Notes: generated from the letters alone by a model not told the origin. 64,000 nt of DNA from Thecamonas trahens ATCC 50062 (GCF_000142905.1 NW_013657645.1:297231-361230); one strand, 5' to 3'. Counted from the first letter of the stretch, positions 14,983 through 22,241 are shown. Program-made: numbers and translations.

Positions 14983-15631
14983 CTACGTTGGGTGTGGACC
15001 GTCAAACGTGCGCTGCGTTCCAAAGTGAAAAAAACCCGGCCATCAATTAATGTCTCAACAAAGGATCGTCATGATCTCACCGGGGCAGAATTGCCCTCGC
15101 AACGTCCCATCTCATGCTTGTAGCACGAGGACTAGCCAAGACATAGACGAGTGCGATAAAATTGAAAGCGGGATGCCCATACCTCTGGTCTCAGTAGAGA
15201 GAACGGGAGGGATAGACGAGATCGGAAGTAACTAACGTTCAAGCCAAGGTTCAATAATCGTTGCTGAGCCTTAACGTTCAACCGAACGTCTAATAATCGT
15301 TAGCCCCCGTTTGGGCCCCTTTCAGCAAAAAGCAAGTCCTCTCCGCTTTGTCGAAGAAGACGAGTTGGCGCACCACCTGTCGCACGGTGTGGCCTCTTCC
15401 ATGGGCAACAGCTTCAGTCACACAAGCATCCCGGAAGAGGCATACCTTCTCAATGCTGTGGTTACCAAAAGCCTCCAAAGTATGTCATTCCTCCTCCCCC
15501 TCCCCCTCCCCCTCCCCCCCTCCCGTTCCCCCCCCCCTGCCCCCCTCCCCCCCTCCCCCGCTTTGGTAAGCGCTCCCCACCGCGGCTGGTTGGGACAGGC
15601 ATGGACAACGTGATGCCGTCAATGTATATGA

Positions 15632-18600
15632 GTGAAACACTCATGCAGTTTATATTTGGGGGGATTATTGGGAGCAGCGGATGCGTACACTTTTGCCAAG
15701 ATCGTCAATGAGCTGACCTCGCTGGCATCGGTCAGCCCCCTGCCGTACATGGTACAGGCCGACGTGATCTGCGCTCCGGACCAAAGAGGGAAGCCGGTCA
15801 AGTCGAGCTCATCGTACTCGTCATCGGACGAAGATTCATCATCGGAGCTTCATGCCGAGGACAAGGCGGAAGCGACCGCGGCGCTGGTCGAGTATGGCGA
15901 AGCGGTGACGGCGGCGATGTGGAACCAGGCGCTGCGGGCGCTCGGCATCTCGCCGTCCGAGTTTGCGGGGGTGAGCGTCGACGACGCTGCTACGCTGGCC
16001 GGGCCGTCGGCATACAACGACTCTAACGAGTCGTCGAACTCGTCGTCGTCAACTTGCTCGTCGTCATCGGATGTAGAGTCGGCGCAAGTGTCGCCCAAGG
16101 CCTTGCTGCTGGCGCAGCTGCCAGCGCTCAAGATGTTCGATCTAGTGGCAGAGAACGACGGGCTCTCGCTGCGCGAGATGCAGGTCCTTGCGGTGCTGAT
16201 TGTACCTGCGCCCAACGGCGAGGCGGTGGTGACCAGGCTCTCACAGGTGTTTGGGGTGTGGTGGACGAGCGCCGACGGGGTGGAGACATTCTATGGCGCG
16301 GCGGTGCGCGGACTTCAGCGGATGCACCACCTCGGCTTTGCCGCCTTCTCTAAGGACCTCATCCGCAAGTCGCTGAAGGACCAGGCCAAAGCCAAGGCTA
16401 AGGCCAAGGCCATGGCCAAGATCCAGGCCAAGGCCGACGGCATGCGTGCGTCTCTGGAGGAGGCGCGGTCTGCGGCCAAGGCTCGCCTCGAGGCCGAGAT
16501 AGAAACCCGCAAGGCGCAGCTGGCCGAGGCCAAGAACGCAGCCATGGCCAAGGCGGCCGAGAAGAAGGCCGAGCTTGACGCCAAGCTTGAAGCCACGCTT
16601 CCACCTGAGCTTTTGGCTGAGAAGCAGCGGTTGGAGACTGAGTACGAGGCGCAGATTCGTGAGCAGGCTGCCGCGGCCCAGGCCAAGGTCAAGGCGCTGG
16701 CGGTCGAGGCCAAGACGGCTGCAGCTGATAAGATTGAGGATGTCAAGGGCTCGGCCGCGGCCAAGCTGGAGCGCGACCCCAAGATTGCTGCGCTCCTTCG
16801 TGAGCGGGCGCTGGTGCGCAAGCTCTACCGCCGCAACAGCTTTGCTGTCCGTGACTGGACCGTACTGGAGCCGGCTCTTGCCGCCCACGCCGAGCTTGCT
16901 AGCGACGACGAGGCGCGCAACATTGCCGCCGTCGTTGCCAACGTCCCGCCCGAGCTTATTGCGTATCAGGCCATGTACGCAGCTGCGCTCCTCGAGTCCA
17001 GTCGAGTTAAGGACGGCCTGGAGATCTTTGGTCAAGGCCTTGTTGCCGGGCTGGGTATTTACGCCGCCGCCGGTGCGCTGTCCCAGCCGGAGGGTGCGTT
17101 TGACATTGACTTTGATTTTGTCGGCGTTCCAGACCTCGGATCTCTGGGTGGTGGACTAGGAGGACTAGGTGCGGCTGGGGTTGGAGCCCTTGGTGGCGTT
17201 GGTGACGTTGGGGCTGGTGCAGTGGGTGGCATCGGCGAGGTTGGAGCCGCCGGCGTTGGTGGCGTTGGTGACGTTGGGGCTGGTGCAGTGGGTGGCATCG
17301 GCGAGGTTGGAGCCGCCGGCGTTGGTGGCGTTGGTGACGTTGGGGCTGGTGCAGTGGGTGACATCGGCGGTGTTGGCGTCGCCGCAGTTGGTGGTGTCGG
17401 TGACATCGACACCCCCAACGTCGGCACGCCTAACATTGACGCTCCGAACGTCGACATTGATCCGGCCGGGGTCGCTGGAATGGGTGGTGTCGGTGACATC
17501 GACGCTCCCAACGTCGACATTGATCCGGCTGGGGTCGCTGGAGTGGGTGGTGTCGGTGACATCGCCGCCCCCAACGTCGGCACGCCCGACATCGACGCTC
17601 CCAACGTCGATGTCGATCCTGCAGCTGCTGGCGCGGTCGCTGTCGGCGCAATGCAGATCTCGGCGCCAGACGTCGAGGCTGCACCACCCAATGCTGACGT
17701 TGATGTCGAGGCTGCGGGTGATGCGGTGACGGCGGCCGGAGCCGCGGGACTCAAGGCCGGAGCTGATGGACTCGAAGCGCTGGTCAACGCTCCTGTGACC
17801 CCGTTCCGGTGGGGCAACATCCTTAACTACGTTGGGTTCTTCTTTCTAATCGTGGAGCTTGTTCAGCTTATCGCGCTTCCGCTCAAGGATTACGAGGCCG
17901 GGACAGACCTCGGCGCGTTTCCGCAGGTGGTCTACCTCGAATTTGCGCGGACATCAATCTCGTCGCCAATCAACCTGACAACGTTTGGTACGGTTCTCGG
18001 CTTTTCGCTCGTTGGCCTCCTCCTGCTCGTCTTCTCGTTCCAGTTCCTTCGTGAGCTGTGGCAGTTTGAGTTTCTCAAGCGGCTTAGCGCCGAAGAGCGC
18101 GCCGCGCGTGAGTTGCCTGAACCGGCCGACTACTTCTTCTACTCGGTGGCTGGCTCGGTCATTTATGGGCATGGCAAGCCGCGACACGCCGCGTCGACGG
18201 TCAAGGCGCTCATATCGGTCCTCTCCGATGCCGGCTTCCTGCTCGTTGCCAACAAGCTTCTCTCCCTTCTTGCGTGCAGGTATACATCGAGCGGCGCCTT
18301 TCTTCTCATCGACCCGTCGATCCGGTGCTGGGAGGGCTCACACTCGGCGCTTGCCGCCTTTGCCCTGATCGCTCTGCTGTACTACGTCCCGCTCTGCGTC
18401 ATGATTGCTCCGACCCTGGTGGCCGACGACTCGTCCAAGGATACCAACTTTGCCAAGCTCTATCTCATGATTACCAACATCATCAAGTCGCTCATGCTTG
18501 TCTTTGCTACCTTTGCCTTTACTTCGCCAGTCATGCGGCAAGTCTCGGCGCTGTTTGGCTCGGCTGCCCTGGCCGCGCTTACTGCTGCCTGGACTTGGCG

Positions 18601-21028
18601 CTCACTCCGCGACGAGACAGATCCGCACAACGAGCCCTCGCCGCATGCCTTTCTCTCCATCCAGAAGGCCGGCATGTTCTACATCGGCGCCCTCTCGGCG
18701 TTGGTCGTTCTCTGTGCCTCGGGCCAGCTCAAGGGCCTGGTGCTCTTCGCGGTCCTCCTCGGCGGAGCGCTCCTCTTTGTCGGCGCTGTCTTTGCCATCC
18801 GCGCCAAGTTCTTCTCGCCCGAGTCGGCGGCAGCAGGCAAGGGGCCGGACATGATGATCAACCACCTCGACGGTGTCTCTGTCCTCACCGACATCTATGA
18901 CGAAGCCGGCCAGGTCGAGTTCTCCGCCATGCACGACAACGCCCGCAGAAACGCGCATGTTCTCATCTTGGTCTGCTCGATCACCTCGCGGGGCTCGCTA
19001 GAGTGTCTCCGCGAGATAGCAGAGAGCATTGCACGTGTCCGTGACGATGCCATCAGAAACCTGCCGCTTGTTGTCGCCTGCAACAAGATGGACCTCGAGA
19101 GCGACCGGGTCTTTGCGGATGCCGAAGCGGTGGCGCTGGCTACCGAGTTCAACGCCCCGCTCGTTTTCACGTCTGCCAAGACCCGCCTCGGCGTCGACGA
19201 CCTGTTCTCTACCGCCATCTCTGCCGCTGCCGAGAACACGCCGTACTGCCAAGGTTCGTTCGAGGTCAAGATCGTGATCTGCGGGGACGGCGGCGTCGGC
19301 AAGTCGGCACTCACTGTGCAGTACGTCTCCAACCATTTTGTGGATGAGTACGACCCGACCATCGAAGACTCGTACCGCAAACAGGTTGTGTTCACACCGC
19401 GATCGACAGCAGCACCTGGTGGTGCACGCAGGGCAGGTAGTGTCACCAAGGGCGGTCGAGCGAAGAGGTCACGGGCGGCACTCCCAGTCCAGCCGGCGGC
19501 GCCTCCGGAACCACTGTCACGAGACATTCAGAGTAGTTCACGACGGTCAAGCCTGTCTGCGATTGCACCAGCGACACCACCGTCAACTTCACTCGCCCCG
19601 GCACCGCCGCCACCAGCCTTGTCGCAGCCGGCCGCGATCGGCCCCCCTCCGCCGCCATCGGCCCCGTCAGCGCTGTCGGCTCCGTCGGCATCCATGCAGT
19701 CCGCAGTGATGCCGCCTATGTCTGATCTTGATACTTTTGGCGCAGCGCCAGCCCGGGCGTCGTCGTCAGCGCTGCTGGATGATCGCTCGATGGGTCCCAT
19801 ACCCGCTATGAAGCAGAGTGCCTTCTTTGACGAGGAGGACGAAGACGAGTTTGTGGCACTGAACGATCTGCAGATGGCTGACGACGGGATGATCGAGGCC
19901 GAGATCTGCGCCGAGCCGGTTGCACTGAACGATATCTCATCGCTTGCACCGATGCCCGCTCGGGCGTCAAAGTCGGTGGCGGCGCGGGCGCCTTCGGGTG
20001 GCGGGCGAGGCGGCCACGCTAGTGGCAGATCAATGCCGCCGTCGTCGGCGCGCAAGAAGAAGAAGAGGGCTGCTCCGGCGGCAAAGCTGTCAAAACGGAA
20101 AGAGGCGCCCAAGAAGCGTGACCTGGCCAAGGAGCTCGAGCCTGAGATCATACCTATTCCCAAGATCGCGCCCGCGTCTATGTCGGAGTCTGCTTCGTCG
20201 TCTGCATCTGCCGATGACGACGCAGTGTCGGCCGAGTCCGACTCTGAAGTCGGCGCGGCGCCGGTGGCAGACATCAGCTCGGTCCCGGCAGCCTTTCCCG
20301 CCGGGGGACTGTTGGACGTGGCTGGCGGTGAGGTGGCCGAGACTGAAGGAGAGCGTAGACGGCGCGAGCGGGAGGAGCGCTTGGCGGACAAGCGGCGCAA
20401 GCGCGAGGCAAAGCGGGCTGCCAAGGAGGCCAAGAAGCAGCGCAAGGCCGAGGCGAAGCGCAAGCGAAAGGAAAAGATCGACAACATCTACGCCAACATG
20501 GAGAACGCATTCAATGGGATCGGCAAGGCGATGCTGACGGTGATGCCGTCGAAATCCCCCGAACTACTGCGGGGCCGCAACGCAGTGGTCTATGTCTACC
20601 TGCCGTGGGTGCTTTCTGTTGCCATTTTTGCACCAGTCCTCCTCCCGCCGCTCATGGTGGTGCTCCTCCTCCCGTCGCTGTTTATGCTCCTTGTACTGCG
20701 GACCAAGTCGATCGAGCGTGACACAAAGAAGTTTGTGGCGCGGGCCAAGGTACTCGCGCAGGAGACCAAGAAAAAGTCCGCGCTGCGGTGGATGGCGCTG
20801 TTTATCACGGCGCTGCCGCTGTTTGCGGTGGCGGTGATCATTCCGCTCGTTCTCTGCCTAGTGGTCTTCCCCAACGTTCCACGCAATCACCAGCAAGGCG
20901 TCGTTCAGTCGTGTGTCGGCATCATGCTTGCGGCGGTGACCGCACTGCAGATCTTGGGCACCATCCGGGCAGCCAAGACGAACGAGGAGCTGAAAAAGCT
21001 GCGGCTCGCGCCAGCCACTGCTGAATGA
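15632..21028 (+). CDS. Multipass membrane protein with a circularly permuted Ras (cpRAS) domain; true 5' end uncertain (possible upstream exon MGNSFS.. at 15401)
   Basis: Coiled coil, then Gly/Asp repeats, ~8 TM helices (17810-18820), Ras motifs in the order [29 protein letters not shown], a low-complexity linker and 3-4 further TM helices. Confidence 0.85.
17140..17640 (+). repeat. Coding tandem repeats ([20 protein letters not shown]; [14 protein letters not shown])
   Basis: Near-identical ~60-bp repeats inside the 1798-aa ORF. Confidence 0.85.
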
Positions 21029-21048: not shown

Positions 21049-22241
21049 TCACCATGTCTGTGCCGGTGCAAGACTGTCGAGCACGAGCGAGAGCTTGCTG
21101 GTTGTCGCGTAGCCGTACAGGTAAGCCTTGGAGTCCTCGGCCCACGGCGAGGTCTCCATCAAGGCGACGAGATCGTCGAACTTGGCCGGATCGACAAAGC
21201 TTTCCACGGAGGCAAGGGTGCCGATGGACCGGGTCTCGTCGTAGATGTTAAGAAGCACGTTGCCGGACTCCTTCCAGTCGATGGGCAGCTGAACCTTGAA
21301 GATGAGCTTGCGGCCGGTGAGGTTGGTAGGTACAGAGCCATTCTTGAGTGGCGTTTCCATGCTCTTGCCAATCTTGTCAATCGGGACGTTGAATGGGGTG
21401 CTCCAGATGTGCTTCTGCTCGAGCTTGTCGAGTTGAACAGAGAACACGTTAGTGCTGATCGGGACGCAGACTTGCTTGTGCGCCTTCCAGTCGATCTTCT
21501 GGCAGCTGCGCGAGCAGTAGACAACCGCCTTGCACCGAGAGCAGCGCGAACGCGACTCACCCTTCCCGCACACCTTGCACAGCGCGAGAGCCTCGGGATC
21601 TGGCACACCATCAGTGCCGTCATGGTACGCCGGAACAATGAACGATGCCTTCCACGGACCATATGCGTCACCGCGGATGGCAGCACGTGACTCGTCGCTG
21701 AGCTGGGTGCCGTTAGCGGCCAGCCACGCAGCCATGTGCTCGACGGCGTTGGCCGAGATGACGGTAGAGGAGACGCCCAGTTCTGAGCGATCCATGGCCA
21801 TAGAGATGGCATCAAGACAGTTCATGGCGTTCTCCCGCTTTGCGTGGATGTAACGGACAGCGATGAGCGGAACAATGTCCCCATCGACCTCGTACTCGTA
21901 GACACCGACCCGCTCGATGGAGATGTTCTGCGTCTGATCCTGGTCCTGGCCAATGTGAAAACAACCATCGCCATCAAATACAGCACCACATGTAGCAGCA
22001 TTCTCTGGCCGACCACGGAGCTTCATGAAGTTGATCTGATCAAAGGAAGACGATACGATGATGGCCATCAACTTTGCGTCGTAGCACACGGGCTCTGTCC
22101 CAAGCTCATGGGTCACGCCCATAGCCTTTTCCGCCACAGAAAACTTGTCAAAAAGTACGTCGACGTAAGCCGCTCTCCACGTCCGCTCCATTCCTTGAGC
22201 TTGCTCACCTCTACCTCCTTCTTCTCGTTGCTGGCTGCCAT
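21049..22241 (-). CDS. MYND zinc-finger protein; likely exon 1 at 22241-22209, intron 22208-22144
   Basis: CKVC..CSRCKAVVYCSRSCQKIDWKAHKQVC. A GTGAGC..AAG intron joins MAASNEKKEVE to FSVAEKAM in frame. Confidence 0.8.

Follow-up and report, generated by a model that had tools for sequence, protein, structure and literature searches.

A circularly permuted Ras domain in a predicted twelve-helix membrane protein of Thecamonas trahens with swapped membrane modules

What kind of protein carries a small GTPase with its motifs in the wrong order between two sets of hydrophobic segments? This question is raised by a locus of the apusomonad Thecamonas trahens ATCC 50062, lying in a window of 64,000 nucleotides (GCF_000142905.1 NW_013657645.1:297231-361230) in which a single frame on the plus strand, 15632-21028, runs uninterrupted over 1798 codons. 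A first-pass annotation had placed here, at 17810-21028, a receptor-like multipass membrane protein fused to a circularly permuted Ras GTPase (cpRAS). That left edge falls inside the gene, which starts at 15401. The analyses described below were carried out on the open frame, with amino acids counted from 15632, and on the database protein P0151 ('Ras oncoprotein [Thecamonas trahens ATCC 50062]', 1706 aa), which is 100% identical and corresponds to one NCBI gene model. We consider it probable, with good confidence, that one gene encodes a polytopic membrane protein with a true cpRAS domain, that this protein belongs to an undescribed family in which a GTPase is combined with some 12 transmembrane helices, and that its membrane modules have been swapped.

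The GTPase domain and its motifs are located as follows; the motifs were found by regular-expression scan, the domain by swapped Pfam and PDB matches, AlphaFold2 and Foldseek.

18863-19399, plus strand: cpRAS GTPase domain, aa 1078-1256
18899-18913, plus strand: G3 motif DEAGQ, aa 1090-1094
19082-19093, plus strand: G4 motif NKMD, aa 1151-1154
19172-19180, plus strand: G5 motif SAK, aa 1181-1183
19283-19306, plus strand: G1 motif GDGGVGKS, aa 1218-1225
19349-19384, plus strand: G2/effector motif of 12 residues, aa 1240-1251

Each motif occurs once in the whole 1798-codon frame, in the order G3-G4-G5-G1-G2. Ras is the sole Pfam family found in the frame; the profile (PF00071, E 1.2e-32) matches in two swapped stretches, with positions 42-159 at aa 1078-1198 and positions 1-40, picked up through the Roc model, at aa 1213-1252. 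A phmmer search against all PDB chains likewise returned KRas (E 7e-39) in two stretches of swapped order with 45-50% identity. From a 35-row alignment AlphaFold2 predicted the product of 18827-19411 as one domain, with a predicted local distance difference test score (pLDDT) of 88.8 and a predicted template modelling score (pTM) of 0.86. The predicted elements follow each other as beta3-alpha2-beta4-alpha3-beta5-alpha4-beta6-alpha5-beta1-alpha1-beta2, with a direct run from helix 5 (model residues 123-135) into strand 1 (144-153), and the top Foldseek match of the model is KRAS (110-111 columns at 1.3-1.5 Å). The break between beta2 and beta3 is the one by which cpRAS proteins are defined (PMC2430557). 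On these grounds the domain recognised in the first-pass annotation is real. An arrangement of two truncated Ras copies was ruled out, as each motif is present once.

The equivalents of G12, G13 and Q61 are intact, as had been noted earlier, with A11 replaced by D and T58 by E. The effector stretch, including the TIE G2 motif, is identical to that of Ras, and the best PDB matches are KRas and HRas. Given the intact nucleotide-binding and catalytic motifs, the domain probably cycles between GTP and GDP. It is single-copy in the Thecamonas genome. Published cpRAS proteins fall into a VWA type and an alpha-2-macroglobulin-like type only, in agreement with the first-pass annotation (PMC2430557), and the 1798-aa frame gave no Pfam match to either kind of partner. 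The partner is a membrane domain in the same frame, with about eight helices before the GTPase and four after it, so this part of the earlier description stands as well.

To find out what this membrane domain is, relatives were collected by searching aa 720-1260 against 1.84 billion representative proteins. Besides classical cpRAS-VWA proteins and ordinary Ras, this returned a set of proteins that match the membrane part. Piecewise phmmer comparison and a family hidden Markov model (HMM) of 662 positions showed that 33 relatives share two membrane modules, one block of ca. 220 residues consisting of a juxtamembrane helix and four helices (4TM) and one block of ca. 350 residues with eight helices (8TM); relatives that seemingly carry 8TM only turned out, with the family HMM, to be N-terminally truncated fragments. 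In the Thecamonas protein the modules lie as follows, the 8TM helices being placed by the AlphaFold2 model of the relative P0022.

17774-18823, plus strand: eight-helix membrane module (TMblock, the 8TM module), aa 715-1064, family HMM positions 287-656
17828-17884, 17993-18049, 18206-18274 and 18350-18412, plus strand: 8TM helices 1-4
18464-18526, 18548-18607, 18668-18724 and 18737-18799, plus strand: 8TM helices 5-8
18824-18862, plus strand: junction of 13 residues from the tail of the last helix to the cpRAS, with two Met codons at aa 1074-1075 (18851-18856)
20327-20989, plus strand: juxtamembrane helix and four-helix module (C3TM, the 4TM module), family HMM positions 53-271 at aa 1566-1786
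20480-20512, plus strand: conserved juxtamembrane helix motif of 11 residues
20582-20695, 20789-20869 and 20900-20962, plus strand: 4TM helices, the first segment read as a hairpin

The Thecamonas 8TM module keeps 16 of 16 invariant family columns, with the YGHG motif and the C...CW..H loop; its invariant residues are Q745, F836, S838, G841, Y845, H847, C882, C899, W900, H904, Y918, P920, P927 and K952. In the 4TM module the invariant residues E1711, R1719, P1738 and R1779 are kept. The 4TM module is unique in the Thecamonas genome and the 8TM module has distant paralogues only.

Three of the relatives have a name, namely CAOG_08748 of Capsaspora owczarzaki and two proteins of the foraminifer Nonionella stella; about 30 others are environmental, two of them on compact, intron-poor metagenome contigs. 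The Capsaspora and Nonionella proteins carry a cpRAS, and the former starts 6 residues before beta3. The environmental protein P0143 (L022:1331-4390) combines 4TM and 8TM with a Rab-like GTPase of canonical order (GDTGVGKS ... DTAGQ), and therefore small GTPases of more than one kind occur with the membrane domain. The environmental proteins P0020, P0025 and P0045/P0160 (L021:3001-6627) have a degenerate Ras-like domain in which G1 and G3 are missing. P0020, P0025 and P0045 also have an R-SNARE (Synaptobrevin, E down to 3.8e-18) with a hydrophobic anchor of its own, joined in P0025 by a C2 domain, and these combinations hint at a role of the membrane family in membrane traffic. Some members without any GTPase keep the membrane domain. 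By sequence, the Thecamonas protein thus appears as a member of an undescribed eukaryotic family of a GTPase and about 12 helices, the GTPase being usually a cpRAS and sometimes canonical or degenerate. The first-pass annotation did not recognise the architecture as described. This holds for the literature, in which our search found no paper on a membrane-type cpRAS protein, but the family itself extends to Capsaspora, a foraminifer and environmental eukaryotes. Word-index protein searches, for which the membrane region and the family alignment served as queries, gave only the protein itself or one extra match, and such a blank is uninformative. The EukProt protein P0156 (112152_1, 1287 aa) has an N-terminal canonical Ras, WD40-type Pfam matches and some 6-7 C-terminal hydrophobic segments; it represents a separate, unrelated Ras-plus-membrane architecture.

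The two membrane blocks of the Thecamonas protein are the halves of one domain in swapped order, a point that the first-pass annotation had missed. In 33 of 33 relatives the family HMM matches collinearly as a single piece, with the GTPase or N-terminal region first, then 4TM and last 8TM. The Thecamonas protein is matched in two swapped pieces, with HMM positions 287-656 at aa 715-1064 and positions 53-271 at aa 1566-1786, so that alone among the 34 members it has the order 8TM-cpRAS-linker-4TM where relatives have GTPase-linker-4TM-8TM. A BLASTP comparison with the Capsaspora protein shows the swap directly (8TM, E 2e-37; cpRAS, E 2e-33). The cut lies in a short variable loop between the modules, where ca. 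15 HMM positions are missing, and all invariant residues are kept. Judged from these alignments, the whole protein is a circular permutation nested around the permuted Ras domain. Since the relatives have the opposite module order, combined MAFFT alignments misplaced their cpRAS rows; such alignments were not used, and the cpRAS and the membrane domain of a relative were folded separately.

The swap may have arisen by tandem duplication, fusion of the end of one copy to the start of the next, and loss of the outer parts. The two Met codons at the start of the cpRAS, where the Capsaspora protein begins, fit such an origin. No remnants of duplicated cpRAS or membrane modules were found in the N-terminal 700 aa or in both flanks; an 'AP.T' common to the C-terminus and the start of 8TM was considered and rejected as too short to count as a remnant. 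An exact-pattern scan of metagenome contigs for the junction gave no match.

Hydropathy and the positive-inside rule give eight helices at aa 733-1056 (17828-18799) and four at aa 1651-1777 (20582-20962), the last 8TM helix ending 21 residues ahead of strand beta3. The Lys/Arg counts of the loops fit 8+4 helices in which both modules begin and end in the cytosol and the invariant Cys pair lies in an outer loop; the YGHG loop carries eight positive charges, and the loop that follows the first hydrophobic stretch of 4TM carries 11. With all module ends cytosolic, the module swap therefore leaves the membrane topology unchanged. The AlphaFold2 model of the membrane domain of P0022, a relative of 703 aa in canonical order, has a pLDDT of 80.1 and a pTM of 0.81. 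The first hydrophobic stretch of 4TM, 36 residues long, is read here as a hairpin because only an even number of helices is compatible with the way the Thecamonas protein is connected, and in Thecamonas a Pro-Pro lies in its middle.

The two modules of the window protein were also submitted to complex prediction, which gave an interaction prediction score from aligned errors (ipSAE) of 0.71, compared to 0.00 for the best of 3 controls. A score at the mark used here is seen in 51 of 78 solved complexes as against 2 of 108 mismatched pairs, and among eukaryotes in 39 of 65 solved pairs without a like older complex as against 2 of 126 pairs that are unrelated. At least 54% of the contacts are shared between runs, and the pLDDT of the partner is at least 56. 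The confident interface is formed by the last two helices of 4TM and the region of 8TM with C882, C899, W900, H904, Y918, P920 and K952. This prediction supports a structure in which the split modules would still pack together.

No Pfam family covers the membrane domain in the window protein and 29 relatives. The first-pass annotation had pointed to a signature C..L.IDPSI.CW.G.H of protist TRP/TmcB-like membrane modules; on the TmcB part of this label the literature search brought up nothing relevant. A likeness to TRP-like proteins is suggested at the level of profiles. In hhalign comparison with Thecamonas alignments of PF06011, 129-141 columns were matched with probabilities of 86.9% (E 4.2e-6) and 84.1% (E 7.5e-6), as against 0.2% for reversed controls, but the PF06011 Pfam model itself matched, above its gathering score, neither the window protein nor the 29 relatives, nor the locus in a six-frame scan of the genome. 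The matching region spans the loop with two Cys residues (C...C[WY]EG), together with the preceding helix and some three helices that follow. ESM-Atlas features lead to eukaryotic clusters that have not been characterised and, weakly, to PF06011. No animal six-helix tetrameric TRP channel was among the matches of the Foldseek and VIA structure searches, a missing match being weak evidence. The 8TM core is probably a remote relative of the Flc/Pkd2 group as far as profiles can tell, which provides a lead for function and does not amount to membership. Calcium homeostasis, as well as calcium entry upon stretch, has been linked to this group (PMC9600462, PMC9727806).

At least 47 loci of PF06011 are present in the Thecamonas genome, and the locus described here is not one of them. 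This TRP-like expansion lies mostly inside very long open frames of 500-2700 aa, for example at C43:258785-259591. Two distant paralogues of the 8TM module, G000:C45:35693-39040 (L016) and G000:C18:320874-324098 (L017), are 28-35% identical over ca. 75-110 residues and sit behind leucine-rich-repeat (LRR) regions in a receptor-like layout.

The remaining parts of the gene are the following.

15401-15479, plus strand: putative exon 1, encoding MGNSFS..., with a GT donor at 15480; P0151 opens with the same peptide
15480-15677, plus strand: intron 1 of 198 nt, containing a C-rich tract and closed by the AG acceptor (15676-15677); no coding signature in the G+C content of third codon positions (GC3)
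15678-17773, plus strand: N-terminal cytosolic region of ca. 700 aa, in-frame GC3 0.70
19400-20326, plus strand: low-complexity cytosolic linker, Pro/Ser/Ala-rich, with acidic and strongly basic stretches
21026-21028, plus strand: stop codon, 21 residues past the last helix

The start at 15401, with a first exon of 79 nt and the intron of 198 nt, follows from the P0151 model and the sequence. The MGNSFS start is a possible N-myristoylation site. Most of intron 1 is occupied by a long C-rich, CCCT-like tract (15483-15561). The N-terminal region comprises an acidic Ser-rich stretch, a Lys/Ala/Glu stretch resembling a coiled coil and Gly/Asp-rich repeats; it gave no Pfam match and no phmmer match among 150 relatives. 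A part of the linker, ca. 19436-19771, is an intron in the NCBI model. It is in frame without stops, its in-frame GC3 is 0.59 as compared to 0.70-0.79 in every conserved part, and both proposed splice sites are crossed unspliced by contigs of RNA libraries. Spliced or not, this in-frame segment leaves the architecture unchanged. Downstream, a convergent gene with a MYND-type zinc-finger motif (21049-22191, minus strand) ends 20 nt from the stop codon, and therefore the 3' untranslated regions must overlap.

Every part of the gene is covered by contigs of four environmental RNA libraries (subsurface and seawater), most of which have at least 99% identity, and inside 17800-21028 they are free of joints. 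The contigs are short (150-460 nt), and DNA may be present in RNA libraries. In mapping them the repeat at 15483-15561 was left out, and no RNA joint was seen for exons 1 and 2. Eight environmental variants were found, of which five are non-synonymous; all lie outside the conserved cores and they are too few for inference of selection. Across the junction of the membrane module and the cpRAS (18800-18862) the in-frame GC3 is 0.90. The open frame and the GC3 make a single coding unit well supported at the sequence level.

Several observations weigh against the combined reading of one gene, a 12-helix membrane domain and a module swap. None of the RNA contigs listed bridges 18805-19259, so that a single mRNA is not directly seen, and the Met-Met pair lies exactly at the start of the cpRAS, where a separate shorter product could begin. 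The model of P0022 contains 11 long helices and not 12, the first hydrophobic stretch of 4TM forming one helix of 36 residues. A Foldseek search of the PDB with the model of the relative gave a best E of 0.18, hence no solved relative, and the best match in an all-against-all VIA search (Z 7.8) was to generic helical bundles. In the hhalign comparison with PF06011, block-shuffled controls still gave 3-36%, the loop motif alone carrying much of the score. The maximum-likelihood tree of the GTPases is poorly resolved, and the swap rests on one assembly of one apusomonad.

If the reading is correct, the Ras switch would be held at the membrane by its own helices rather than by a lipid tail. The effector loop, being identical to that of Ras, would engage Ras regulators and effectors, and the state of the switch would control or report the activity of a channel- or transporter-like membrane domain. 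In Thecamonas the cpRAS would be tethered at both ends, 21 residues from the last 8TM helix. In Ras, the turn between beta2 and beta3 lies beside helix 5, where the normal lipid-bearing tail exits the domain, so with a tether through this turn the domain would be oriented to the membrane much as Ras is. The same turn is the far tip of the interswitch hairpin, away from the nucleotide, and direct coupling to the switch is therefore speculative; to our knowledge, Ras does not shift this hairpin.

Among the alternatives, the one that survives best takes the membrane domain as an anchor only, which replaces the prenyl tail while the Ras domain signals to soluble effectors. Rheb-TM provides a precedent (PMC5869587), the C-terminus of the Thecamonas protein has no CaaX box, and the Ras-identical effector loop suits such a role. 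Anchoring does not need 12 helices, however, and would not account for some 20 polar, Cys, His and Pro residues that are invariant from filastereans and foraminifera to apusomonads, or for the membrane domain being retained in family members that have no GTPase. We regard this explanation as unlikely.

The first-pass annotation had favoured a one-component receptor or channel-G-protein, in which the chain ends lie near the switches and the membrane domain drives the switch mechanically. The short connection of 21 residues from the last helix to beta3, the remote TRP-like signal of the membrane core and the LRR regions of the distant 8TM paralogues in the genome all speak for such a protein. 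The description as receptor-like does not agree with the predicted topology, in which the outer loops have at most 36 residues and there is no ectodomain. Nor is the closeness conserved, since the distance from the GTPase to the first helix in relatives ranges from roughly 100 residues (Nonionella) to more than 400 (Capsaspora), so that direct membrane-switch coupling has to be given up as a general feature of the family. From what is generally known of Ras, moreover, the beta2/beta3 turn points away from the nucleotide. Taken together, this makes the mechanical explanation unlikely. A stronger version of the coupling idea reads the nested permutation as a nucleotide-gated clamp, because the cpRAS sits between the halves of a split TRP-like membrane domain. 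Both chain ends of the cpRAS leave the beta2/beta3 hairpin, from which the chain runs straight into the two switch regions (I and II), and the bound nucleotide, GTP or GDP, would therefore alter the packing of 4TM and 8TM and gate a channel or transporter. We hold this to be improbable; if true, it would describe a Ras-gated membrane protein in a single polypeptide, and the wider family would be an unrecognised class of GTPase-regulated membrane proteins from early eukaryotes.

A further explanation is that the locus yields two products, the N-terminal region with 8TM and a cpRAS-linker-4TM protein starting at Met1074/1075, which jointly would make up the family protein in split form. The Met-Met pair, the start of the Capsaspora relative at the equivalent point and the lack of a crossing contig among those listed are in line with this. 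Translation could begin internally at Met1074/1075, or the pair could mark where an ancestor with the GTPase in front once started. There is, however, no stop codon between the two parts, so that absence of a full-length protein would require an upstream end of translation, and the high GC3 across the junction and the single NCBI gene model also argue for one chain. Two products are accordingly improbable in our judgement. Hardly credible at all is a mis-joined contig hiding a gene of canonical order: the arrangement is known from one assembly and is unique among the 34 family members, but both junctions are in frame inside a 361-kb contig, the cpRAS and 4TM are single-copy and therefore left the assembler nothing else to join wrongly, the break in the HMM match is clean and costs only 15 loop positions, and near-identical environmental contigs cover the region.

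With one gene and one nested permutation as the preferred reading, the origin of the Ras permutation itself can be considered. The first-pass annotation had raised an independent permutation. The cpRAS sequences were re-ordered to canonical topology and placed in a tree with canonical Ras-family matches, and approximately unbiased (AU) tests were done under LG+G4 on 55 of 124 rows, after 69 canonical and VWA-type rows had been dropped at random or manually. A single clade of all cpRAS was not rejected (p 0.595), nor was a single clade of the membrane-type cpRAS (p 0.787), the constrained trees being 9.2 and 28.4 log-likelihood units, respectively, above the quick free tree. Because neither clade is rejected, nothing favours an independent permutation. 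Thecamonas also has a classical cpRAS-VWA gene (916 aa, G000:C59), and, according to a 2026 paper, CPRas proteins may date back to the last eukaryotic common ancestor (PMC13393502). A full-length homologue of cpRAS-VWA with canonical Ras order was observed in P0154 (Pelomyxa schiedti 'Ras GTPase', 997 aa) and P0037, which were compared with L020:3804-6551. In the P0154 type the zinc-finger, VWA and C-terminal parts align (E 2e-60), with G1-G2 at 56-105 and G3-G5 at 107-220. Such a protein could be the unpermuted ancestor of CPRas1 or a reversion.

The interest of the locus lies more in the nested permutation and the unrecognised membrane family than in the reasons given by the first-pass annotation. 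The protein adds a third, integral-membrane architecture to the little-studied cpRAS group, and it offers a Ras-family switch that would be anchored by its own membrane helices and not by a lipid tail. The conserved membrane domain has no Pfam entry or solved relative and is repeatedly paired with GTPases, sometimes also with R-SNARE and C2 domains. One circular permutation nested within another is a rare natural case, and the module swap is a natural experiment which implies two separable modules with their ends on the same side of the membrane. All of this rests on prediction, with regard to the transcript as much as to GTPase activity and membrane function.

Among known systems, the same permuted GTPase is found in the cpRAS-VWA proteins (CPRas1 type; Elias and Novotny 2008, PMC2430557), which have the same G3-G4-G5-G1-G2 order, the same beta2/beta3 break and the TIE motif, with 40-47% identity. 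The zinc finger, VWA and Sec23-like parts of these proteins are absent from the Thecamonas membrane protein, and their cpRAS is near the N-terminus whereas the Thecamonas domain is internal, in a 12-helix membrane protein. An internal cpRAS between the halves of a larger conserved protein is also present in Dictyostelium DdiCPRas2 (PMC2430557). The host of the latter is soluble and alpha-2-macroglobulin-like, unlike the integral membrane host in Thecamonas, where the apparent insert results from a move of modules and not from insertion of a GTPase. Permutation of P-loop GTPases has also occurred naturally in the YRG/YlqF proteins, which act in ribosome assembly, but these belong to another family with a different break (G4-G5-G1-G2-G3) (PMC2430557).

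With respect to the membrane part, the PF06011 TRP family, including yeast Flc1-3 and fission yeast Pkd2, shows a remote profile likeness over ca. 130-140 columns; a TRP_N-type N-terminal domain is lacking in the Thecamonas protein. We know of no GTPase in Flc/Pkd2 proteins. In the literature, Rheb-TM of the SAR clade comes nearest, a Ras-family GTPase that no longer has its prenyl tail and carries four transmembrane segments behind the GTPase (PMC5869587). Rheb-TM differs in being a canonical Rheb with four helices only; the Thecamonas cpRAS did not emerge as a Rheb orthologue, its best matches being to KRas and HRas. The same modules and invariant residues are shared with Capsaspora CAOG_08748, which is listed in databases as 'hypothetical protein' or 'Ras family protein', and to which the Thecamonas protein adds its N-terminal region of ca. 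700 aa.

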